From NCBI GenBank assembly GCA_002269645.1, contig NIVC01000996.1:62001-126000 (forward strand): DNA of 64,000 nucleotides, given 5' to 3'. This DNA is from Macrostomum lignano. Its lineage: Eukaryota. Made by a program: the position numbers and the translations under genes. The notes under the pieces were generated by a model. The model searched no databases, had not been told where the DNA came from, and saw only the letters and a list, made by a program, of their open reading frames with translations. Shown one piece after another: positions 1 to 64,000 of the stretch. Positions within the stretch are counted from its first letter, which is position 1; each line of letters begins with the position of its first letter.

Positions 1-921
1 AAGGATGTGGAATTCGCTGAGAGTCGACGGGCGTTGGACGCTTCAATGAAGATGAGTACTCGAGAGGGCAGAGGTAGTGGACTGCGTAGAGCTGAGCCTG
101 TTCCTGCCAGCATAGAAGACAAGCTGTGGCAAAGTGGCATGCTTGGTCGGGATACGCCAAAACAGCTAGTGAGTGCTCTGATCTGGTGCGTCGGTAAGCA
201 CTTTGCTCTCCGCGGGGGATCCGAACTGCGTAATCTGGTGTACAACCGCCAAATCCAACTGGAGAAGGTAGACAATGAATTTTGCTTGGTTTATAGAGAC
301 AACGCTGGAACGAAATCCAATCAAGGCGGCCTAAAGGGCCTTCGTCGCGAACCCAAGGTTGTCAGAGCTTTCCACACCGAAGATCATGCCAGGTGCATTG
401 TCTGTGTGTACACGGACTACTGCGCGCGTCGGCCACGTGAGTGCCATGAAGCTCTTATCTTGTCATGCAATCGTCAGTGGAAGCCAGACAGCCGCGCCGA
501 GTGGTTTATGCGGACGCCAATGGGACGGCACACCCTGGCTGACACTGTCAAGACTTTAGTGAACGATGTTTCGCCTGGTAATGGTACACGCTACACTAAT
601 CAAAGTCTACGCAAGATCTGCGCTACCACCCTGAACGAGGCTGGCGTGCAACGAGCTGACATAGCACGTGTGACCGGGCACAGTAGCAACGCTTTAGAGC
701 GCTACATTGGCATCTCAATGAGTCAAGAGAAAACTTTCAGCGCCATCCTAGCTGGATCTGCAGCTGCTGAAACGAAACCGGAAAGTGCAGCAAAAACCGA
801 GCCGACCGGGGCTGGAGATGGACGGTGGCGTTGGCAGTGGTCAACCAAGGGTGAAGAGAATGCGCCTGGAGGTGTGTGGCGATACAAACAAAGTGAGCAT
901 CTATTTCGAATGATTGAATGA
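1..921 (+). mobile_element. Crypton-type (DUF3504-like) tyrosine recombinase ORF, 5' part cut by the window edge
   Basis: The frame is open from base 1. It carries tyrosine-recombinase motifs in Crypton/ZMYM-family context: KLW..G.LG.DTP, FALRGGSE (catalytic R), K.NQGGLK, PMGRHTL, TNQSLR (HxxR position), VTGHS (H) and LERY (catalytic Y). Confidence 0.8.
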
Positions 922-11562: not shown

Positions 11563-12771
11563 CTAAAAGGTTCTCTGACTGTCCTCGCTATTAGGCAGGC
11601 ATTTCTTACAGAACAGGAAATCGGAAACTGAGGAACTGAAATTGAAAAGCGCTTGGCGAAACAGCTTGTTAGCGTAGGCATAGATGAGGCTATTGGTGCT
11701 GAAGTGCAGGATGTAGAGCAGCTGGGCGGCCAGTCGCATTACATTGTAGTAAGCGTAGATGTGCTGCATATCTTCACTCAGAGTTGCAAATGCCACTTGG
11801 CCCAGGCTGAGTGCCAAGTAGTTGGGCAGATTAAAAGCTAAATAAGCGAAGCAGAAACCCATCAGCATTCGAGTGATTTGGCACTGGTGCTTGCGCAGCT
11901 CTGGCCCGTACTGCTGGATGCCATCGGCTGCCAACTCCGCTGGCCGATGAACGCGGCGGTTTCCATCGCTGCTGCTGCCAGCAGTGGTGGGCGTTGTCAC
12001 CATCAGCTCCATAGCGGCTGGACAGTTGCTCCTGACACCGCCGCTGCTGCAGGCCTGACTCGACAAGGAACCGCCGCGTACAATGCTTCTAACGAGGCGC
12101 CTGACCCGGCACAGGATCAGGAAGTTGAGCAGTAGCAGAATGAGTCCAGGTACAAAGGACACAATCATAGCGTCGGCAAGTTGAAACGCCCTAGCGTGAG
12201 CCATACCAGTAGCCACACACATCAGCGTATCGTTGTAGCCAATGTACTGACTGTAATGTACTGTCCAACGGCAGTGCAAATTCCAGGAGATCGATGCTGC
12301 GACGGCGAGTTTGATCAGCAAACAGACTCGGTGGGCGTTCTTTCGACAGCCGGACAAGCCGCTGGGAGCTCTGAGAAACAACAGGCGGTCAATGGTAATG
12401 ACAACCAGCAGCCAAGGACTGAGCATCGATACCAATCCGTACAGGTAGTTGGTTATAAAACAGGTGTAGTGACTCCAGTCGTGCAAGTTGGTGTAGCTCA
12501 AAGCGAAGTAGAACAACAGCAGGAAGAAATCATTAGCTGACAGCAGACGCAGGCCAACAGACAGGTAGTGCCTGCGGACCGGTTCGCACCAGAATACGAA
12601 GAAATTCACCAAGTTGGTTGCCATGCCGAGCAGAGCCGCAGCCATGGTAGCGTGCTTTAGCCAGCGAGTGTTAAGATACAAGAATTCACTATTCGATGAA
12701 GCATACTCTTCTTCTAGAGACACGTTCGGGAAAATGGTAGTGTAGTTTATCGATGCGACATTATAGTCCAT
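11563..12771 (-). CDS. Rhodopsin-family (class A) peptide GPCR, FMRFamide-receptor-like, CDS intronless, 402 aa
   Basis: Seven hydrophobic segments, N-terminal sequons (NYT, NVS), GMATN in TM1, LSAND in TM2, ITIDRL at the DRY position, FNLP in TM6 and NSLIY at the NPxxY position. Confidence 0.9.
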   Translation of the reverse strand: MDYNVASINYTTIFPNVSLEEEYASSNSEFLYLNTRWLKHATMAAALLGMATNLVNFFVFWCEPVRRHYLSVGLRLLSANDFFLLLFYFALSYTNLHDWSHYTCFITNYLYGLVSMLSPWLLVVITIDRLLFLRAPSGLSGCRKNAHRVCLLIKLAVAASISWNLHCRWTVHYSQYIGYNDTLMCVATGMAHARAFQLADAMIVSFVPGLILLLLNFLILCRVRRLVRSIVRGGSLSSQACSSGGVRSNCPAAMELMVTTPTTAGSSSDGNRRVHRPAELAADGIQQYGPELRKHQCQITRMLMGFCFAYLAFNLPNYLALSLGQVAFATLSEDMQHIYAYYNVMRLAAQLLYILHFSTNSLIYAYANKLFRQALFNFSSSVSDFLFCKKCLPNSEDSQRTF

Positions 12772-17061: not shown

Positions 17062-18704
17062 TTATCTGCGGCAGAAGATGAACCGCTTGCACAGGTTAAT
17101 AAACGCGCGCCTGTAATGCCGGTAAGCGTAAGCGTAGATCAGACTGTTAGTGGCGAAGTGCAGATAGTAGAACCACAGGGCGCCAGCTCTCGTTGCGTTA
17201 AAAACAAAATAAGTAAACTGCGACTGCCACTCAATCCGAGAGAACGACGCGAAACCGTACAGAACCAGCAGGTAGTTTGGGAAATTGAAGGCAACATAGG
17301 CGATACAATAGCCCAGGAGCATTTTGGTTAACTGGCACTGGTGCTTGAACAGCTCAGTCTGCTGGTACTGGCCCTGTTGCTGTGGTTGCGGCGGCGTTGA
17401 ATGCGCTCGAGCAGCGGGAACCATGGCCGAACAGGAGCGGCTGCGTCCAGGCGAAAGCTGCCGACGCTGTTGTTGATGCGTCTGTTGGCGACTTCGTGGT
17501 TGGTTGGCCTGGCAACCGCAGCAGCAACAGGCGCCGTCTCCGCAGCAAAGTCGTCTCCTAGTAGCAGTTGCGCGGTCGGCGATCGGACAATTAGTGGTCT
17601 CGCTTCGGCGGCCTGTGCAAAATCGGACTGAGTAGCGAGGTGCTGGCGCGAGCGATTCGCTGGTGCCACCGCTGGTCCCGCCACCTGCACCGGAGTTCAG
17701 GTGTTCCAGCTGGAAGAGCGGAAAGGTTTGTTGGCTGTTTGATTCCCGAAGTGTTGGAGTAGAAAGATGCATGTAAATTGTAGTACATTGTATAAAAAAT
17801 GTATCAGCTCTGTTGTGTAACACTGATTGCCTTCTATCAATGAATTCTTGTCGCACATCTTCTGCTGGTTAAATCCTAAATTTGTCGCTAGTAACCAGTG
17901 AGACCTAATCCATCATGAGGTCAAACTCCCATGCACTTGGTCCCTCAAAATTCCCCAAGGAGTCTTCACCTCCACCAGCGATCCGTCACCGGCTCGTTCG
18001 TTGCCGCGGCACACGGTGTTCACCAGGCTGTTGATCCGGCACAGAATGATGACGTTTAGCAGGGTGAGCAGAAAGCCGGGCAGAAACGAGGCCAACACAC
18101 TGTCAGCCACTATGAGAGCGCGATTGCTGCTCTGGGAGACGCAGACCAGAGTCTCGTCTCCATTGCCGAGCACATTCAGGCCGAAGCTGACCAGCCACAG
18201 AGAGTGCAGGCTCCAGAGAGCGCAGGCCAACAATACAGCCAGGAGGGCGAGATTTGCCCGACGTCCAGATTGCCGACCCATGGCGACGTCGGCTGCAGCG
18301 GCACCAGCGACGCCAGGATTGATGAGGAACATCAGCCTGTCGATGGTGATTGACACCAGCGTCCAAGGCCCAAGCGTTGTAGCCAGGCTCAGCGCGTAGT
18401 GAACTGCCACGCAAGCGCCCTCGGAGTAGTTTTGAATGCTGCTGTTGTTCAGAGCCAGGGTGAGCAGCAGTAGGCATAGACTGCTCAGAGACAGCACTCT
18501 GAGACTCAACGACAAGTAGTGCCGTCGGACCGGCTGACAGAAGAAGACCAAAAAGTTCACCGAATTAGTTGCTACGCCGGCAATCATCGTGGACAAGTTT
18601 AAGTAGTGCAGTGAGCCCATCAGAGTTAGCATGTAACTGGGGAACTCTCCAATAACTGAGCTGTTAGCTGACTGATTGTCTCTTTCAGTCGAGTTGAAAT
18701 CCAT
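17062..18704 (-). CDS. Paralogous class A peptide GPCR, two exons (18704-17970, 17709-17062), ~460 aa
   Basis: TM1-5 are in ORF 17913-18704 and TM6-7 in ORF 17062-17856. A phase-0 intron with donor GAG|GTGAAG (weak) and acceptor CTTTCCGCTCTTCCAG|CTG joins them in frame. ELFKHQCQLTKML and NSLIYAYA match the first GPCR. Confidence 0.8.
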
Positions 18705-28628: not shown

Positions 28629-30032
28629 TTAGTTCAACGTTTGCAGCAGCTTGATGCGATAGGGCCGCGCAACATCACGGCGTCGCAGCATCTTGCGCAT
28701 CCGTTCAACATCGCCGCCGCCAATGGAGTCGAACCAGTGCAAGTCCAAATCGCGACAGAGGCCGTGGAATCGTTGAAACACCTCCGTGTAGCCCTGCTTG
28801 CCCAGCCGACTGTTCGACTCGTATGACAGCAGATTGTACAGCAGATTCTTCAGCCGTTGGTTTACTTTCGGTCGGTCGTCAACTTTTGGCCGAACGTTGG
28901 CTCGCCAGAGTTTGAGAAAGGACCGTTTCAGCTGCTTGTCATTGCTCGGTGGCGTCCCGGTGCCATCGGAGTTCGTCGCGGAGTTGTTAGCAGCTGCGGT
29001 TGCTGCCGGGGACTCGAGAATTTTGGCTCGGTGCTCTTCAAAAGGCAGCCGGCCGTAGATCATGTGGAACATGAGCGCGCCAAGGCTGTACCAGTCCACT
29101 GAGTGATCAACCATCCGGCTGCCCTCCTCCAGCTGTTCGGGTGGCACCCAACGGATTGAGGCAAAGACGGACACAGAGCAGGGACTGCCCCAATAATAGT
29201 AGGGATTCTCAATCGCTTTACCGAGAGCGCAGGCTTTGGCCAAGCCAAAATCGCCAAGTTTCACGTCGCCCGCTTCATCGATTAGGACGTTGTCGATTTT
29301 CAAGTCAAAATGAATGAATCCGCTCTCGTGCAGGTAGCTAAGCGCTTCAGCCACCTGCAGCGACAGGTAAGTCACGTAGGTCTGCAAGTTCACAGCCTCG
29401 CGGTGCCGCTCATCGGTGCCAGCGATGTGGTCCAGCAAGTTCATGGCGTCTCCGATGGCGTAGTACTCGTAAACTTCAAACGGTCGATCCGTGGTGGTGA
29501 GGGCGTACTGCGAATCTAATAGCTTCGCTATAAACGGATGATCGCAGTGCTTAATGTGCGAGATACTTTTCACAATGTCCATCGATTCGAGGTTGCGGCA
29601 GTGAAGCTCCAACGATTCGGACTGGTGCGGTTCTGCGCTCATGTGCTTCTTGATCTGTTTGACAACCACCGACCGGCCGGTCTGTAGCGCCAGCAGCTGT
29701 CGATCTTTGATTCCGTCTTCGAGACCGTCGCCAAGCAGCTTCGCCGTTTGAATCACGGCCAGATGCGTTGTGCCGAACGAGCCCTCGCCGATTCTGGCGT
29801 ACAGTCGATAGGTAGCCGTGGCTGTCTCTAAAACTACCAGCTCATCGTCTTTGTTACCTTTCCCATTGCCAGCTCGAATGTGCTTGGCGCATTGCGGTAT
29901 TTCGAACTGCTGCTGTTGCTGCTGCCTTGTACCGCTGCTTGACCGAGATCCGCTGTTGGCACTGGGCACTCTGAGCTGATGCTGCTGCTGATGATGGCTA
30001 TTGCTGCTGCGCGACTGATGCGGGTGAAGCAT
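28629..30032 (-). CDS. Divergent Ser/Thr protein kinase (AGC-like), non-RD, single coding exon, 467 aa
   Basis: IGEGSFG Gly-loop, VVVK Lys, HFDLKIDN catalytic loop, DFG, VPPE and VDWYSLG, behind a Q/S-rich N-terminus. Confidence 0.92.
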   Translation of the reverse strand: MLHPHQSRSSNSHHQQQHQLRVPSANSGSRSSSGTRQQQQQQFEIPQCAKHIRAGNGKGNKDDELVVLETATATYRLYARIGEGSFGTTHLAVIQTAKLLGDGLEDGIKDRQLLALQTGRSVVVKQIKKHMSAEPHQSESLELHCRNLESMDIVKSISHIKHCDHPFIAKLLDSQYALTTTDRPFEVYEYYAIGDAMNLLDHIAGTDERHREAVNLQTYVTYLSLQVAEALSYLHESGFIHFDLKIDNVLIDEAGDVKLGDFGLAKACALGKAIENPYYYWGSPCSVSVFASIRWVPPEQLEEGSRMVDHSVDWYSLGALMFHMIYGRLPFEEHRAKILESPAATAAANNSATNSDGTGTPPSNDKQLKRSFLKLWRANVRPKVDDRPKVNQRLKNLLYNLLSYESNSRLGKQGYTEVFQRFHGLCRDLDLHWFDSIGGGDVERMRKMLRRRDVARPYRIKLLQTLN

Positions 30033-39835: not shown

Positions 39836-42800
39836 ATGCCAATTCCACCGAAGCCGCCAGCTCTCAAGATCACGGCAGTGACTCATCAGTCTCTGGAGCT
39901 CAGCTGGGAGACGCTGCACGCGAAGCTGACTGGAGTCCTCAGCGCACAGGATGGCAAGCTTAAGTCTGAGGTCTGTTTTATAGAGTTGAGAGATGAGATT
40001 TACAGACAGAGATGCAGGGTGAGAGGAGAGAAAGTAGATATAGGGAGAGAGAGATGTAAGGGAGAGAAAGTAGATTTTGGGAGAAAGAAGATTTGGGAAG
40101 AGAAAAGATTTAGGCATAAAAATGTAGGGAGAGATGTAGGCATAAATGAGATACAGGAAGAGGAGATGCAGGGATAGATGAGATCTAGAGAGAGGAGATG
40201 CAGGAAGAAAAGAGATGTAGGCATAGCGAAGATGTAGGGAGAGAGAGTAAATGTAAGGAGAGAAATTTAGGAAGAGAGATGTAGAGAAAGAGGAGATGAA
40301 GGGAGAGAGGAGATGAAGGGAGAGAGGAGATGAGGGGAGAGAGGAGATGAGGGGAGATAGGAGATGAAGGGAGATAGGAGATAAAGGGAGAGAGGAGATG
40401 AAGGGAGAGAGGAGATGAAGGGAGAGAGGAGATGAAGGGAGAGAGGAGATGAAGGGAGAGGAGATGAAGGGAGAGAGGAGATGAAGGGAGAGGAGATGAA
40501 GAGAGAGAGGAGATGAAGGGAGAGGAGGCTTGCACTACCCTACCCACACACTCGATCCCAGGTGCAGGTGCAGCGCTCCGACCAGCCGCAGCCAGACAGC
40601 TGGGACGTGGCCTACAAAGGCTACGACACGAAGTGCACAGTGACTGGCCTGTCAGACAGCCAGTCCTACAGCCTGCGCTTCCGTTTCGGCGTCGACTCCG
40701 GTTGGGGCGAGTTCTCCAACCCGCAGTCGGTCAAAACCGCTCGCAGACTGTACACCGGCGAGGATCTGCATCGTCTGGTTCGACTGGAGAAACTGCAGGA
40801 GCTTCAGCGCGTGTTAGACACAGGCGAGGCCAATCCCAACGCGCCAGATGACAAAGGCTTCAGCCCCCTGATGCAGGCGGCTCTCGCTGGCAAGGCCGAG
40901 TCCTGTGAGATGCTCATCAATAGCGGAGCCCAGGTGGACTGGTGCGGAGAGAACGGTGAGTCAGGAGATTACCGATTTTATTCTGTCATCAGCTGACACT
41001 TGATTCAGCATGACGCTCTCTGACAGTTGATTCAGCATGACGCTCTCTGACAGTTGATTCAGCATGACGTTCTCTGACAGTTGATTCAGCATGACGTTCT
41101 CTGACAGTTGATTCAGCATGACGCTCTCTGACAGTTGATTCAGCATGACGCTCTCTGACACTTGATTCAGCATGACGCTCTCTGACAGTTGATTCAGCAT
41201 GACGCTCTCTGACACTTGATTCAGCATGACGCTCTCTGACAGTTGATTCAGCATGACGCTCTCTGACAGTTGATTCAGCATGACGCTCTCTGACAGTTGA
41301 TTCAGCATGACGCTCTCTGACAGTTGATTCAGCATGACGCTCTCTGACAGTTGATTCAGCATGACGCTCTCTGACACTTGATTCAGCATGACGCTCTCTG
41401 ACAGTTGATTCAGCATGACGCTCTCTGACACTTGATTCAGCATGACGCTCTCTGACACTTGATTCAGCATGACGCTCTCTGACACTTGATTCAGCATGAC
41501 GCTCTCTGACACTTGATTCAGCATGACGCTCTCTGACAGTTGATTCAGCATGACGCTCTCTGACACTTGATTCAGCATGACGCTCTCTGACACTTGATTC
41601 AGCATGACGCTCTCTGACACTTGATTCAGCATGACGCTCTCTGACACTTGATTCAGCATGACGCTCTCTGACACTTGATTCAGCATGACGCTCTCTGACA
41701 CTTGATTCAGCATGACGCTCTCTGACAGTTGATTCAGCATGACGCTCTCTGACACTTGATTCAGCATGACGCTCTCTGACAGTTGATTCAGCATGACGCT
41801 CTCTGACACTTGATTCAGCATGACGCTCTCTGACACTTGATTCAGCATGACGCTCTCTGACAGTTGATTCAGCATGACGTTCTCTGACACTTGATTCAGC
41901 ATGACGTTCTCTGACACTTGATTCAGCATGACGTTCTCTGACACTTGATTCAGCATGACGTTCTCTGACACTTGATTCAGCATGACGTTCTCTGACACTT
42001 GATTCAGCATGACGTTCTCTGACACTTGATTCTGCATGACGTTCTCTCGCACTTGATTCAGCATGACGCTCTCTGACACTTGATTCTGCATGACGTTCTC
42101 TCGTACTTGATTCAGCATGATGCAATTCATGGTTGTGAATTGCACGACAGCCCACCGGCTGTTTTTTACGTTCACACCAGCTCCAAACGAATGTGGCCGC
42201 GCATGCAATCGAGCCATGCAGGGATCGTAATTACCGCTGAGCTGCTCTGAGCTCCTTTAACTGACCTTGGTTAGCAGTCCTTGGATCCTAAAATTTCGCA
42301 ACCCCCCGCAGGCAAGACGGCCCTCATGCTAGTGTGCTACAGAGGCATACTGTCGAGCATCAGGCAGCTGCTGGATCGCGGTGCCAGCAGACTCAAACGG
42401 GATCGCAAAGGCTCCACAGCACTGCACTACGCTGTTGACGGCGAGAAGCTCGAAGCCATCAGCCTGCTGTTGAACTTCTGTCCGGAGAGCGATGCAATGA
42501 ACAGGGAGTCAAAGTCAGACAAGGCTCTTGTCGATGAGCAGGGTGAAGAACCTATGAGAAGCGAGTTGCTCTCGGCCAGAGACGCAAGCGGATGCTGCGC
42601 CATCGTGCGCTGCGCCATGCTGAAGAACAACGGCAACCCGGATGTGACGAAGGCACTACTCGATGCTGGAGCCAGCGCTGACGCGGTCGATGATCAGGTG
42701 AGTGCGTGGGGCTGCAGGTCCGCCACGACGTTGACATTCCACATTCGCCAAGCCATTAAACAGCCGACAAATTGTCTGCAAAACCTAAACCCTACCCTAA

Positions 42801-43599: not shown

Positions 43600-44365
43600 C
43601 GAGATTCCCTGTTAGAGGAGATTACTGTTAGATATGAGATTCCCCTGTTAGATATAAGATTCCTCTGTTAGAGGAGATTCTTGTTAGATATGAGATTCCC
43701 CTGTGAGAAGAATCCTGTTAGATATGAGATTCCCCTGTGAGAAGAATCCTGTTAGATATGAGATTCCCCTGTGAGAAGAATCCTGTTAGATATGAGATTC
43801 CTCTGTTAGAGTAGATCCCTGTTAGATATGATATTCCCCTGTGAGAAGAATCCTGTTAGATATGAGATTCCTCTGTTAGAGGAGATTCCTGTTAGATATG
43901 AGATTCCTCTGTGAGAAGAATCCTGTTAGATATGAGATTCCTCTGTTAGAGGCGATTCCTGTTAGATATGAGATTCATGTTAGATATTAGATTCCCCCCT
44001 TAGATATGAGATTCCCCTGTGAGAAGAATCCTGTTAGATATGAGATTCCTCTGTTAGAGGAGATCCCTGTTAGATATGATATTCCCCTGTGAGAAGAATC
44101 CTGTTAGATATGAGATTCCTCTGTTAGAGGAGATTCCTGTTAGATATTAGATTCCCCCGTTAGATATGGGATTCCCCTGTTAGATGAGATCCCTGTTAGA
44201 TATGAGATTCCTGTTGGATATGAGATTCCCCTGTTAGATGAGGTCCCTGATGGATACGAGATTCCCCTGTTAGATGAGATTCCTGTTAGATGAGGTCTCT
44301 GTTAGATATGAGATTCACCTGCTAGATGAGATACCCCTGTTAGATATGAGACTCCTGCAAGGCAT
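43600..44365. repeat. Composite minisatellite of 14-20-bp subunits (GTTAGATATGAGATTCCCCT / GTGAGAAGAATCCT)
   Basis: Alternating subunits are visible immediately 3' of the FANK1 stop. Confidence 0.92.
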
Positions 44366-44624
44366 GAGATTGCCTTACTGGACATGCACTATATCATGTT
44401 ATTCAATATCAACCACTTTCTACATCTAACAACATTCTTCTAAATTTCAGAATTCGAAAAAGTTTAAAACCGTTGGAATAAACAAAAGCTGATCTTGTCG
44501 GAACCATCACAATGCAATGCACTGCGATCAAGTCTAGCAAATGTACACGCATAACTTATGAAGACAGACCTCAGAAAACTTTTCCAATCCCATAATAACA
44601 TAAAATTTTTATAACAAAGCCAAG

Positions 44625-44868: not shown

Positions 44869-45257
44869 GACCACTGGATAGGTGAAAAGTAAAAAATAGA
44901 AAACTCGAAAACTTTTTACTCTTTAATAGAGTTAAAATTGAGAGATTTTATAGTGGGCGAGTAACTTACACTCGAAGAATTCTGATTTATTATATTTTAT
45001 ATTTCAATTTGTGGCCTTTAAATAAAACACAGAGCTTAATTGTATCGGTCCAAAAATACCGCGGGTAAAAAGTTTTCAACCTGAATAAATGTTGCACAGC
45101 ATACGAGTGCACAGAAAGCAAAAAAACAATGTTTTAGGATATATTTGACGCTTAATAAATCAAAAATTACTTTTAAGACACTTTTCTGCCACAAAGTGAT
45201 TTTCTCTCTTTCTAATCATATCAATGTAATTTTTTGTTTAAATGAAACCAAAAAAGC

Positions 45258-45409
45258 CCAACGCGCGCACAGACTTAGCCAAACAATGTCAAGCAAAGTT
45301 TTAGCCAATAATATCAGACAGGTGGCGCCCATCCGGTGTACTGGTGCGGACGGTTCCAATTAGGATTTTAACGCCGAGGCCTGTCGTCATACGTCTGGGC
45401 TCGCGCTGG
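45258..45409 (-). promoter_or_regulatory. SECIS-like element in the 3' UTR of selenoprotein copy 1
   Basis: Minus strand: AUGAC (45390-45386), GACAGG..GGCG, AAA, then CGCC.CCUGUC and UGAU (45316-45313), giving a G.A/A.G quartet. The outer helix CCAGCGCG pairs with CGCGUUGG. The core is near-identical in copy 2. Confidence 0.7.
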
Positions 45410-45574
45410 TTTTTTTATTTGTTTTTGACGAAATTCAATTCATGCTACTATTTAGTCTACTTACAGTAGAGATATACGTTTTTGACCGTCTATAAATTTG
45501 TTTATTCATTGTAAAAAAAGAGAAAACGCTCTTCGGAGAGATTGTAAATGAAAAGTTAATAGCGAAGCACAGCA

Positions 45575-45842
45575 TTACAGCAGATTACATCCGGGACTTT
45601 GAGAATCTTCCAGTACGTTAGGATCGTCGCCATTTGTAGCTCGCTTCACCTGTTCGACAACCTGATTTTCATCAGGAAAGCCGTGCAGCTTCAGCTTGGA
45701 GAAAATCAGCTGGCCATTGATTGTCACCTCGAAGCTGCCCCGGCGACCATCGTGACCGGAGATCTGAACCCCGCTGGGGCACGCGCTGAGAATAGCTCTG
45801 CGCAGGTGCTCATAGCGGGGTTCGTAGCCTCATCCGCTGCCA
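45575..45842 (-). CDS. MIEN1: SelW2/MIEN1-like (Rdx family) selenoprotein, main exon, in-frame UGA=Sec at 45832-45830; exon 1 not located
   Basis: After the acceptor CAATGCAG the exon reads GSG-U-GYEPRYEHLRRAILSACPSGVQISGHDGRRGSFEVTINGQLIFSKLKLHGFPDENQVVEQVKRATNGDDPNVLEDSQSPGCNLL*. This matches SelW2 UGYEPRY, G+FE++ING.L+FSKL..GFP and the CaaX end. Confidence 0.85.
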
Positions 45843-55786: not shown

Positions 55787-57529
55787 CTTTTGAGCACTGT
55801 GCGCCGTGCGCCATGAATAAAAGATTTTGTGCGCCGCAGCGCGCCATGATAAGGTAAGTCTAAGGTAAGGTAAGGTAAGGTATTTATTTCTACCATAAGG
55901 AATTTACAGTAGACAAATTTGAATTTCATTTACGTATTTTATATTGTGACTTACATAATTTACGTAATTTACGTAATTTTATTTTACGAATTATGGAATT
56001 AGGCCTGACACTATATATTTTGCAAAATATAACGAAGTGTAACTATATATTTTTTTCAGCGCCATGCTCCATGTGCGCCGCCAGAGCATTTCCAATTTTT
56101 CCTTGTATGACATGTGCGCTGTGTGTGCCAAAAAAGGCCAATTTGCGCCGGAAAATTCACCAAAAACTGCCACCTTCCCAGCTATGGGTTACATGTCCTA
56201 CATGCATGGAACAGTTTTAACAAATTCAAATTGTTTTACATGTAAAAATTGTAATAATATCACTGATAAAAGACAGTAACGAAGTTCTAAAAAAACTAAA
56301 ATCAGATAAAAATTTCGGAAGTAGGCACTTCCGAAATTTTGACTTTCAAATTTTTTTTGAAATCGAAATTTGCTCTAAACAAATCTGAATTTTGGAAAAT
56401 CGAAATTGAAATTTTGGAACATCTCTAGACTACTATTCCATCCAATAGCAACTTACATATGTGTGTTGTGTTGCCAATAGAAATGGCCAAGTGAATACCA
56501 AGGTTGTGCCCAAGGGCCAAGCATGCAAGTAAATAACTTTATACAAATATATTAATACAACTTACTTATTACAAAAGTAATGCAATAGAAATATTGTATA
56601 AAATATTATTGTTTTGAGCAGCAACACTAATAATTACTCTGTTTATATAAAAATAGACTATTTCTCTAAATATACACTTAATAATAGCCACAAACTTTAT
56701 TATAGCCATAGGCCTAATAAAAACACTATACATGTGCAAATATTAAAATAGTATTAGACTGATACTGGTCTGGAACTTTGGGTATAGCTGTAACTCTTTT
56801 ATACTAGGCCTAGGGCTAGGCCCTATCCTAACAAAAACTGTTTGTACCAATTTGACAGCAAATGAGAATGGAATTAGTTTGCTAATTAGGCCTAAATTCA
56901 TTTATTATATAAAAACTAGGCCTAACAGATTCTTGTAGCTAAATATTTTAGTCTAGGCCTAGTGGATTTCTATCGATTCAAAACCGATTCAATAGATTTG
57001 ACATTTGGATACAATGGCATCAAAGTTAGGCCTAATACTACCAAACTTAAAGAAGGTAGCCCCCTTCCCCCTATTATGTTTCAATCTTTTTTAGTGCATC
57101 AAGTTCAACTGTTCAAGACTCGTATTAATAAAATGATACTTACCAGTATTCAACACTAACGGTAACGGGGTGCGACATCGTAATGTAACTTCTGTCTCTA
57201 AGAATGTTAAGGTTTATTTAGTATTTTATTGTAAAGCGTTTCCTTATTTTTTTAGGACTGAAAATTGATTTTATATAAAAACTGTATCAGCGCGATAAAA
57301 ACAAACATGAAAGTTAACAAATTTTTCCGCAAAATGTAAAAACCAATATCATTTTTAATACAGAACAAAAAAACTCAGAAAATTTTATTACCACATTATG
57401 TAAAATTTAGTTTGCATGATATAGGTGAAGGAAAAACGCATACATGTTATGCATGTAATAGATACATACGGAAAAGTTGTATTCATTTATATATTTTTAA
57501 GGCAATTAAATATTTATTCTCATAAGTTT

Positions 57530-58447: not shown

Positions 58448-58720
58448 GATACCATCAAAGGCCATGATACCATCGTTTAATGTAGCTCTCTGACATACCA
58501 TCGAAGGCCATGATACCATCGTTTATGTAGCTCTCTGCCATACCATCGAAGGCAATGACACCATAGTTTAATGTAGCTCTCTGCCATACCATCGAAGGCA
58601 ATGACACCATAGTTTAATGTAGCTCTCTGCCAACCATCGAAGGCAATGACACCATAGTTTAATGTAGCTCTCTGCCATACCATCGAAGGCAATGACACCA
58701 TAGTTTAATGTAGCTCTCTG
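58448..58720. repeat. 46-bp minisatellite (CCATCGAAGGCAATGACACCATAGTTTAATGTAGCTCTCTGCCATA)n, ~6 copies
   Basis: 46-bp periodicity, e.g. 58543 vs 58589. Confidence 0.92.
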
Positions 58721-58899: not shown

Positions 58900-59500
58900 C
58901 GATGATGCAGCAGAACCAGCACCTGATGCAACAGCTCGCTAGCTGCCACCGTCCGTCCAGCCTCGACACCAGCTGCCTCAACGCCCGCATCAGATGCTCA
59001 CGATCCGACCGGGCTCATCCGCTCCACCATTCTCAAGAACGTGCTTCTCCCGACCTTCGACGGTACGGACCCTGCTGCATTTCCGGGCTTCTGGGATGCC
59101 TTCGTTTACCGCGTCGACCGCTCCAGCCTCAAAGACGTCGACAAATTTGAGGCACTCCGCGGTTTGCTCTCCGGCTCCGCTCTCAAGAATCTCGGTGCCC
59201 TCGACGCCTGCCAACCGGGCGCCTACGTGGAGGACTGCTGCGTGTCCTCCAGGCCAACTACGCCGACACGCAGGAGAAAAAGAACGCCTCCTTCCAGCGT
59301 CTCCTCGCCTTTCACTTCAGCTCTGCCTCCGACTTGGGTGAGCTCGAGGAATTCACAGCTAGACGACCTCCACCTGGCCACCGGCCAGCTCCTCCGCCTC
59401 GGCGAGCTTGCCTGCACCCTCGACAGCTACGTCTACGCGCTCTGGAGCCGCCTGCCGCTTGAATTCCAGAGCGAGATCCGCAATATTCCTGCTTCTAACA
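58900..59500 (+). mobile_element. BEL/Pao LTR retrotransposon gag fragment (DUF1759-like), degenerate
   Basis: LPTFDGTDPAAFPGFWDAFVYRVDRSSLKDVDKFEALRGLLSGSA matches the Pao gag pattern LP.FDG....W..FWD.F......LS...KF..L...L.G.A. There are frameshifts upstream and it is truncated near 59500. Confidence 0.8.
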
Positions 59501-59921
59501 GGCAGCCTCTCATGCCCAACAGGCGCAAAGTGGTTAAAGTTATCTTTTAACTTTCTTCTAATTAACAAATTTTTAAGCTAACTTGCCCTAACTATAGTAT
59601 ATTTTTTCTAATTTAAGCATAATGTACATATCTTTAATGGTCTACAAGTCAAGCGAACTATTTAGTATTTTATTCTTTTTTTAAGTAGCCCTTCATAAAA
59701 AAGCCGCTAGAAAAGTATTCAACCTTGATATTAAAAGTAGCGCAGCATGCGACTGCACGAAGCAAAAAAATGAACTATGTTTCAAGATACATGTATATTT
59801 GATGCCGAATAAATCAAAAGTTACTTTTAAGACACTTTTCTGCCACAACTTATTTTCTTTCTTTCTCCTTTTATAAACGTAACTTTTTCACAGTTTTTTT
59901 GTTTAAATGAAACCAAAAAAA

Positions 59922-60051
59922 CCAACGCGCGCACAGACTCAGCCAGATACGTGTGTCAGACAGGTGGCGCCCATCCGGTGCGATGCTGCGGACGGTTCCA
60001 ATTAGGATTTTAACGCCGAGGCCTGTCGTCATACGTCTGGGCACGCGCTGG
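59922..60051 (-). promoter_or_regulatory. SECIS-like element in the 3' UTR of selenoprotein copy 2
   Basis: AUGAC (60032-60028) pairs opposite UGAC (59958-59955). Helix II is GACAGG/CCUGUC plus GGCG/CGCC, followed by AAA. Helix I is CCAGA.CGU/ACG.AUCUGG, and the outer 11-bp helix is CCAGCGCGUGC/GCGCGCGUUGG. Confidence 0.72.
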
Positions 60052-60215
60052 TTTTTCTATTTGTTTTTGTTTCTGAATTCAATTTATGCTACTATTTAGT
60101 CTACTTAAAGTAGAAATATACATTTCAAATATCAAAATCTGTTTATTCATTGAAAAAAAGACTTCGTTTATGAGAGAGAAATCAAGAAAATTAAGTAAAA
60201 ACGAAGCCAATAGCG

Positions 60216-60486
60216 CTACAATAGATGACATCCACAACCTCCGCTATCTGATCCCAGCTTCTTAGGCTTCACACCATTCGTGGCTTTCCTCACATCGTCG
60301 ATCACCTGTTTCTCAACGGGGAAACAGCGCATCTTCAGCTTAGAGAAAATCAATTGGCCATTGACTGTCACCTCGTAAGCGCCCCGACGACCAGCAACAC
60401 CGGATACCTGAACCCCGCTGGGGCACGCGCTGAGAATTGCTTCGCGCAGGTGTTCATAGCGGGGTTCGTAGTCTCATTGGACGCTG
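60216..60486 (-). CDS. MIEN1: Second SelW2/MIEN1-like selenoprotein, main exon, in-frame UGA=Sec at 60476-60474; exon 1 not located
   Basis: After the acceptor CCTTACAG(CAG) the exon reads SVQ-U-DYEPRYEHLREAILSACPSGVQVSGVAGRRGAYEVTVNGQLIFSKLKMRCFPVEKQVIDDVRKATNGVKPKKLGSDSGGCGCHLL*. It is collinear with copy 1 and has the TGA at the same position. Confidence 0.82.
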
Positions 60487-60675
60487 CTGTAAGGTTGGGG
60501 GAGGGGAATTATAGATGATCAGTAGAGATTTTGCTGTATTACGCAGTACATGTGTGAAGTTGTTACGCAGCGATGTAAATGTACATCTACCTACCGACAG
60601 ACCACTTTTAGTATATGGAAACTTTGAATAAACTACATGTACATGTAGCTTCTGACCTCTCATACTTGATATATC

Positions 60676-60895
60676 TGAGCAATTCCCCCAGTAACCCTCG
60701 ACATCGCAGCAATTCCGCCCGTAAGCCATGACATCTCAGCAATTCCCCCAGTAACCCTTGGCATCTCAGCAATTCCCCCACTAACCCTTGGCATCTCAGC
60801 AATTCCCCCAGTAACCCTTGGCATCTCAGCAATTCCCCCACTAACCCTTGACATCTCAGCAATTCCCCCAGTAACCCTTGGCATCTCAGCAATTT
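60676..60895. repeat. 30-bp minisatellite (CTCAGCAATTCCCCCAGTAACCCTTGGCAT)n, ~7 copies
   Basis: Directly visible. Confidence 0.93.
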
Positions 60896-63800: not shown

Positions 63801-64000
63801 ACTTGCCATTATTATGGTTATTGTCTAAATGAACTTCAATTAAAAAAATTTTTATAACTTATTTTCTTCAGCAGTTGGAGGTTTAAGTTATAAATCAATT
63901 TTGTTCATTATCATAAGTGTATTTTTGTTTCTTTACTCACTTTTGCATGCACTTGATCATTCCTACTACAACTAATTTTCAAAAATATCGCTGATTCGCT

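Follow-up and report, generated by a model that had tools for sequence, protein, structure and literature searches.

Probable SECIS elements with an enlarged apex in two tandem SelW2/MIEN1-like genes of Macrostomum lignano

Macrostomum lignano has a tandem pair of SelW2/MIEN1-like selenoprotein genes, here called A and B, each of which carries in its 3' UTR an RNA element that is probably the working SECIS of that gene. The genes lie on the minus strand of a 64-kb window of contig NIVC01000996.1 (the window being the whole stretch of DNA analyzed), and both elements are therefore read as the reverse complement of the given coordinates. A 20-kb locus of this contig (assembly GCA_002269645.1) matches window positions 55826-35575 with 100% identity. 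The identity of the elements as SECIS is well supported by the gene context, by their uniqueness in the UTR and by selection. The predicted architecture fits best a type II SECIS whose apex has grown to roughly double the usual size, and in which the 5' strand holds two lineage-specific insertions, a bulge and a segment of 12 nt.

One UGA per mRNA, in the redox motif near the N-terminus, would be recoded to selenocysteine (Sec) by way of the hairpin in the 3' UTR. The AUGA and UGA strands would form the sheared G.A quartet and thereby a kink-turn that binds a SECIS-binding protein (SBP2 or SBP2L), which would recruit eEFSec with Sec-tRNA. The unpaired A-run on top of helix 2 would be required for activity. 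The CCUC bulge, 4 nt in helix 2, would shift this A-run from about +13 to +17, and the 12-nt segment after the A-run could close as a 3-bp hairpin and so make a three-way junction of the internal loop.

SECIS detection decides which genes are called selenoproteins, and the classical programs turn away candidates with a Y-shape, a bulged stem or a long apex. Were a real SECIS to break these rules, it would show where the filters lose true elements. The element would also serve as a natural test of apex expansion with the geometry from the quartet to the A-run kept, in a transgenic model organism. The scope is limited to a single gene family of one species.

Host genes

Genes A and B are tandem paralogues of the Rdx family, SelW2/MIEN1-like and with CaaX ends. 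The Rdx domain (Pfam PF10262) was recognized in A with E = 1.3e-13 and in B with E = 5.4e-12. The best relatives in the profile search were fish selenoprotein W2a/MIEN1 and molluscan MIEN1-like proteins, and the product of A is 99% identical to the M. lignano NCBI entry BOX15_Mlig033428g3. Both frames are open through to the C-terminal CaaX box, which is CNLL in A (...SPGCNLL) and CHLL in B (...GCGCHLL); the boxes among the relatives are CVIM, CNIL, CHIL or CILM.

The in-frame TGA is followed by GYEPRY in A and by DYEPRY in B. The relatives share the motif C-G-x-[TGA]-G-Y-E-P-R-Y (transcripts or contigs L002, L005, L006, L009 and L011, and Pomacea canaliculata genomic DNA). Since the context of the TGA in A and B matches that of the Sec codon in these relatives, the TGA codons of the window are assigned as Sec codons.

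In the P. canaliculata homologue, exon 1 encodes MAPVRVEVEY plus TG and is followed by gtaagt, and exon 2 begins with TGGCAAATGA directly after ...ctgcag. Coding exon 1 of A was placed by analogy with this gene, and the intron of A has the same position and phase. The exon lies between the two paralogues, downstream of B, and is identical in the homeologous contig L003; A is thus a separate two-exon gene with an 11.3-kb intron. A search for exon 1 of B up to window position 64000 did not find it. The acceptor of B is at 60487/60486, or at the CAGCAG alternative 3 nt downstream.

Splicing of A as predicted would join TG to T GGC AGC GGA TGA and give C-G-S-G-U, one residue more than the CGxU of the relatives. 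The predicted junction of B would give C-S-V-Q-U, or C-V-Q-U by use of the second AG of CAGCAG (acceptor 60486 or 60483). With these splice sites the redox motif of M. lignano may have CxxxU spacing, as against C-G-x-U in all relatives examined. A spliced-leader AUG as start codon was ruled out, as the acceptors are out of frame with the TGA.

Public annotation holds both real genes only as fragments that begin after the Sec codon. The UniRef entry A0A1I8HGK5, a 397-aa M. lignano 'Selenoprotein W' model, is a fusion of the last exon of B, about 230 unrelated intergenic residues and part of the last exon of A. The positions of genes, element parts and other features are listed in Table 1.

Table 1. 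Features of the window (positions are those of the 64-kb stretch)
Feature	Position	Strand	Remarks
Paralogue B last coding exon	60216..60486	-	Sec TGA 60476-60474, stop TAG 60218-60216
Paralogue A last coding exon	45575..45842	-	Sec TGA 45832-45830, stop TAA 45577-45575
Paralogue A coding exon 1	57144..57178	-	ATG..MSHPVTVSVEY + TG, then GTAAGT
Paralogue B SECIS element (reported region)	59922..60051	-	Basal GC helix to its 3' strand
Paralogue A SECIS element	45258..45409	-	Fold and distances identical to B core
B 5' quartet strand AUGA	60029..60032	-	Next base C at 60028
B 3' quartet strand UGA	59956..59958	-	Next base C at 59955 (A: U); departs from KGAW
B helix 2, 5' strand	60013..60027	-	GACAGG (6 bp), CCUC bulge 60021-60018, GGCGU (5 bp); p 0.93-1.0
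B helix 2, 3' strand	59959..59970	-	GCGCC-A-CCUGUC
B unpaired AAAA (AAR motif)	60008..60011	-	17 nt after AUGA; unpaired p = 1.0
B hairpin 1, UCC-UAAUU-GGA	59997..60007	-	3-bp stem that makes the predicted branch; p 0.87-0.99; invariant between copies
B hairpin 2, CCGUCCG/CGGAUGG	59971..59995	-	11-nt loop 59988-59978; equivalent to helix 3
A 5' quartet strand AUGA	45390-45387	-	
A unpaired AAAA	45369-45366	-	
A 3' quartet strand UGA	45316-45314	-	
A hairpin 1	45365-45355	-	
A hairpin 2	45353-45329	-	
A insertion in quartet 3' flank	~45270-45312	-	22 nt, duplication-like
Stem-loop after Sec UGA	A 45766..45823, B 60410-60467	-	Perfect 10-bp stem GAACCCCGCU/AGCGGGGUUC enclosing 38 nt
AATAAA between stop and SECIS	A 45506-45501, B 60147-60142	-	CAAUGAAUAAACA
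UTR block upstream of SECIS	A ~45430-45475, B 60073-60118		Near-identical between paralogues
UTR block downstream of SECIS	A 45154-45194, B 59808-59848		Near-identical between paralogues
DUF3504/tyrosine-recombinase-like ORF	7-921	+	Probably mobile element
7TM-receptor-like ORFs (two, weak)	11563-12771, 17913-18704	-	
Protein kinase ORF	28629-30032	-	
Minisatellite, 27 nt x 42	40993-42120		Copy number differs between homeologous contigs
Minisatellite, 36 nt x 20	43601-44371		
Minisatellite, 46 nt x 6	58449-58720		
169-aa ORF	59041-59550	+	No Pfam match; just downstream of B UTR
Minisatellite, 30 nt x 7	60673-60894		Directly upstream of B exon

Structure of the element

The elements lie 184-185 nt past the stop codon in both copies, about 440 nt downstream of the Sec UGA. 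Their internal spacing is the same in A and B, with 70 nt between AUGA and UGA, 17 nt from AUGA to AAAA and 49 nt from AAAA to UGA. The sequence-only reading had given the first two of these distances for both UTRs, together with two hairpins beyond the A-run and an extra GC helix of about 11 bp closing the base. All of these were recovered by measurement and folding, the basal helix with a mismatch in one copy.

The minimum free energy (MFE) fold of the 78-nt core is the same in A and B and consists of helix 2, a U-AAAA junction, hairpin 1, one A and hairpin 2, the last of which is joined to the 3' strand of helix 2 with no break. Both hairpins are present in the MFE whether the core, the 130/152-nt elements or the whole 3' UTRs are folded (510-nt UTR; ViennaRNA), with pair probabilities of 0.87-1.0 and the AAAA unpaired at p = 1.0. 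The B element has an MFE of -56.9 kcal/mol, and the elements fold better than shuffled sequences (z = -3.0 for B and -4.6). They form GC islands of 56-59% GC in UTRs of 27-30% GC (B: 59% in 27%).

Helix 2 comprises 6 + 5 = 11 bp, broken by a 4x1 internal loop, and its 3' strand is 13 nt long. The 5' strand is likewise 13 nt if the CCUC is looped out, and the AAAA then stands at 13. Hairpin 1 plus A59996 makes up the 12-nt insertion relative to type II SECIS. The basal helix CCAGCGCGUGC/GCGCGCGUUGG has 11 bp in B and 8+2 bp with one mismatch in A. Helix 1, below the internal loop, is CCAG(A)/(UC)UGG or CAGAC/GUCUG in both copies, plus a GC-rich extension; the 5' strand CCCAGAC, which connects the basal helix to the quartet, has two alternative partners, UCUGG/UUGG and GUCUG. 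The insertion 3' of A's quartet duplicates a UUGGCUAA segment and may form a hairpin of its own; because of it, internal loop 1 has 39 nt on its 3' side in A, as against 17 nt in B.

The predicted branch depends on the small stem of hairpin 1. There is a substantial chance, somewhat short of even, that the UCC/GGA stem is absent in vivo and that the element is a functional SECIS with an unbranched apex, that is, a type II form, unusual in size only, in which the 5' internal loop measures 17 nt and helix 3 is long. The stem is just 3 bp long and shows no covariation, hairpin 2 runs on from helix 2 along the 3' side in the manner of a type II helix 3, and long mini-stems are already known in Ostreococcus, in Chlamydomonas and in a Dictyostelium SECIS. 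Against a missing stem stand the three UCC/GGA pairs, predicted with p = 0.87-0.99 whether the core or the whole UTR is folded (ViennaRNA), and the perfect conservation of all 11 nt of hairpin 1 in the face of 29% neutral divergence.

It appears unlikely, in turn, that the small hairpin is both real and functional and defines a third form of SECIS, whose UAAUU loop and CCUC bulge would contact a flatworm SECIS-binding protein or an accessory factor. If such a form existed and other Macrostomum selenoprotein genes were alike, pipelines that discard Y-shapes would under-count the selenoproteome of the lineage. The element had previously been described as a non-canonical branched architecture. 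Four SECISearch rules are indeed broken (see below), and in that respect the description stands; canonical features are the quartet, helix 2 with its 11 bp and the A-run, and the branch is a 3-bp stem without covariation. As hairpin 2 is moreover predicted to stack like helix 3, a type II SECIS with insertions is the better description, with no new architecture.

Conservation between the copies

Within the 70 nt the two copies differ by four substitutions, all of them in the 11-nt loop of hairpin 2 (CACCAGUACAC vs CAGCAUCGCAC), which bears out the earlier observation that the differences are confined to that loop. A fifth difference in the 78-nt core is the base after UGA, U in A vs C in B. 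The paralogues are an old pair: they are 75% identical over 800 nt, the remaining UTR is 76-84% identical, and 9/31 (29%) of the four-fold degenerate sites differ. At this neutral rate, the absence of any difference among the core positions outside the loop (0/66) has a probability of about 1e-8 to 1e-10; the loop itself, with 4/11 positions changed, evolves at approximately the neutral rate. The CCUC bulge, the UAAUU loop and the junction As are conserved as well as the stems. Set against the four-fold divergence, the unchanged positions indicate that the core is under purifying selection, acting on both apical stems as well as on the bases left unpaired in the bulge, the junction and the UAAUU loop.

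The conserved unpaired bases (CCUC bulge, UAAUU loop, junction As) would fit a sequence-specific constraint and would also fit gene conversion. It is plausible that they form a contact site for an accessory factor or tune efficiency, by analogy with mammals, in which the shape of the apex decides the binding of the repressor eIF4a3, and helix 2 and the internal loop set SECIS efficiency. Covariation was not found: 21/21 pairs are invariant between only two distinct sequences, since no stem base has changed. With two distinct sequences and no compensatory change, the support for the structure consists of thermodynamics and conservation.

The identity of the copies could alternatively result from gene conversion or recent duplication, with one or both genes decaying and the element a non-recoding relic. 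The equal conservation of paired and unpaired positions would agree with this, as would the near identity of other UTR blocks and of the first 75 nt after the UGA, the CxxxU spacing in A and the lack of a B exon 1 in the window. A gene-conversion tract is disfavored because conversion would have erased the loop differences too, and four substitutions packed into an 11-nt loop between identical arms are the pattern of selection on a hairpin. Both frames are also open to the CaaX end, and homeologous contigs, with matched segments 92-99% identical to the window, preserve exon 1 of A and the two SECIS copies without change. Conversion or decay is accordingly considered improbable, and functional SECIS elements under selection are the preferred explanation.

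Homeologous contigs L001 and L003 each contain the A element with 100% identity and, where this is visible, equally placed behind the A gene, and L003 also carries the B element; the matched segments of these contigs are 92-99% identical to the window, with both SECIS copies unchanged. A search of the 64-kb window with a 44-nt core pattern gave exactly two occurrences, both in these selenoprotein UTRs, versus 0 expected. Given two copies in the window and copies at the same place in other M. lignano contigs, the element is not the high-copy dispersed repeat that had been named as a possible objection, as far as the available sequence extends. In the search for orthologues, protein searches returned no other flatworm, a cluster look-up yielded nothing beyond the product of the window itself and the fused UniRef model, and the relatives found in a metagenome scan were all distant, with compact SECIS.

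Comparison with known SECIS elements

The element resembles what has reportedly been described as the type II (form 2) eukaryotic SECIS. Both lie in the 3' UTR, with a quartet after an unpaired A, a G-C first pair, a helix 2 within 11-16 bp, an A-run on the internal loop's 5' side followed by helix 3 and the apical loop, and a helix 1 below the internal loop. Unlike type II SECIS, the M. lignano element has its A-run at +17, owing to the 4-nt bulge, rather than at +10 to +13, and has 49 nt instead of 15-39 nt between the A-run and GA. It further differs in the additional 12 nt that separate the A-run from helix 3 and may fold as a 3-bp hairpin, and in the C at the last quartet position of copy B.

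A further comparison is with SECIS of the same gene family and the same Sec codon position, found in seven SelW2/MIEN1-like mRNAs. The distance between the quartet strands and the position of the A-run are 34 nt and +12 in L002, 45 nt and +14 in L005, 31 nt and +11 in L006, 40 nt and +13 in L008, 35 nt and +13 in L009, about 41 nt and +12 in L011, and 32 nt and +13 in L012, compared with 70 nt and +17 in both copies of M. lignano. The view that the apex is longer than canonical holds against these relatives (31-45 nt) and against the SECISearch distances, which it exceeds. In contrast to the M. lignano element, the seven SECIS are compact, type I or simple type II, with weak folding z-scores; L009 has the core start AUGACGAC in common with it.

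SECIS with long mini-stems occur in Ostreococcus, Chlamydomonas and a deiodinase-like gene of Dictyostelium (Lobanov et al. 2007, PMC2375036). The M. lignano element likewise shows a lineage-specific enlargement of the type II apex on an otherwise standard core. The long mini-stems are a single mini-stem of greater length, whereas the extra length in M. lignano is mostly a branchable insertion in the internal loop plus the bulge in helix 2; moreover, they are common to many genes per lineage, and in M. lignano the analysis covered one gene family. The literature covered, which was incomplete so that a prior description is possible, contained no functional SECIS with a three-way junction or Y-shape and nothing on M. 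lignano selenoproteins.

Detection criteria and uniqueness in the UTR

The SECISaln consensus (PMC2647825) comprises a UGAN/KGAW quartet, a G-C first pair and a helix 2 of 11-16 bp. The element agrees in having an unpaired A before the quartet, a helix 2 that opens with a G-C pair and is 11 bp long, and an A-run on top. The quartet is AUGAC/UGAU in A and AUGAC/UGAC in B, the latter deviating at the W position of KGAW.

The published SECISearch rules require 10-13 nt from ATGA to AA, 15-39 nt from AA to GA, at most two consecutive unpaired nt and no Y-shape, and SECISearch3 has additional filters on apical-loop length and on "bending" of helix 2. All four SECISearch rules are broken, by the A-run at +17, the 49 nt from AA to GA, the 4-nt bulge and the predicted three-way junction. 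The suspicion raised by the sequence-only reading, that default SECIS patterns may miss the element, is therefore supported for pattern-based tools.

The Rfam SECIS model RF00031 gave no match at the gathering score in the whole window or at E <= 10 in either element. As a control, the same model was applied to seven canonical relatives, of which 0/7 reached the gathering score and 1/7 had E <= 10 (L009, 24 bits, E = 0.72). Because RF00031 fails on canonical relatives, its miss carries no weight for or against the element. A tRNA or tRNA-like origin was rejected, with no ARAGORN match and no other Rfam matches.

A second SECIS was sought in 1.5-1.8 kb after each stop codon, as NUGA...GA pairs that close four or more base pairs. 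Only the reported element came up in both UTRs, and no other candidate common to A and B backs the objection that a canonical SECIS elsewhere in the UTR might account for recoding. A GUGA candidate (59891-59813) was rejected as an alternative SECIS, being found in B only and absent from A.

Both copies conserve an AATAAA that lies between the stop codon and the SECIS and precedes AUGA by about 110 nt; the conserved 250 nt beyond the SECIS showed none. Use of the upstream AATAAA would yield an mRNA without a SECIS.

Stem-loop after the UGA codon and other UTR blocks

Sec redefinition elements (SRE), stem-loops beside the UGA, are reported to occur in some selenoprotein mRNAs, and both M. lignano paralogues likewise have a stable stem-loop a few nt after the UGA. 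In each paralogue the stem-loop begins 7 nt beyond the Sec UGA (z = -3.4 and -3.2), and nucleotide conservation in the first ~75 nt after the UGA is far above that of the rest of the CDS. The stem-loop is a candidate SRE-type stimulator of recoding. A matching 3' arm is not present in the fish homologue L002.

The presence of a strong stem-loop after the UGA in both copies, taken with an apex beyond the known size ranges of SECIS and with the absent Rfam SECIS match, could suggest that recoding is driven elsewhere, for example by this stem-loop, and that the 3' UTR element merely resembles a SECIS, being a different cis-element (for localization or stability) or a small-RNA precursor. Eukaryotic Sec insertion, however, needs a SECIS, and SRE-type stem-loops only modulate it. 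The quartet strands AUGA and UGA, helix 2 with its G-C first pair and 11 bp, and the unpaired A-run are all in register, a second SECIS candidate common to both UTRs is absent from the 1.5-1.8 kb scanned, Rfam also fails on canonical relatives, and no tRNA or other Rfam matches were obtained. Such an origin is considered highly improbable, and the assignment of the two elements as SECIS is retained.

Two further UTR blocks are near-identical between the paralogues. The block upstream of the SECIS contains CUACU-UUA-AGUAG plus a second AGUAG, and the block downstream of it reads AATAAATCAAAA.TTACTTTTAAGACACTTTTCTGCCACAA on the plus strand.
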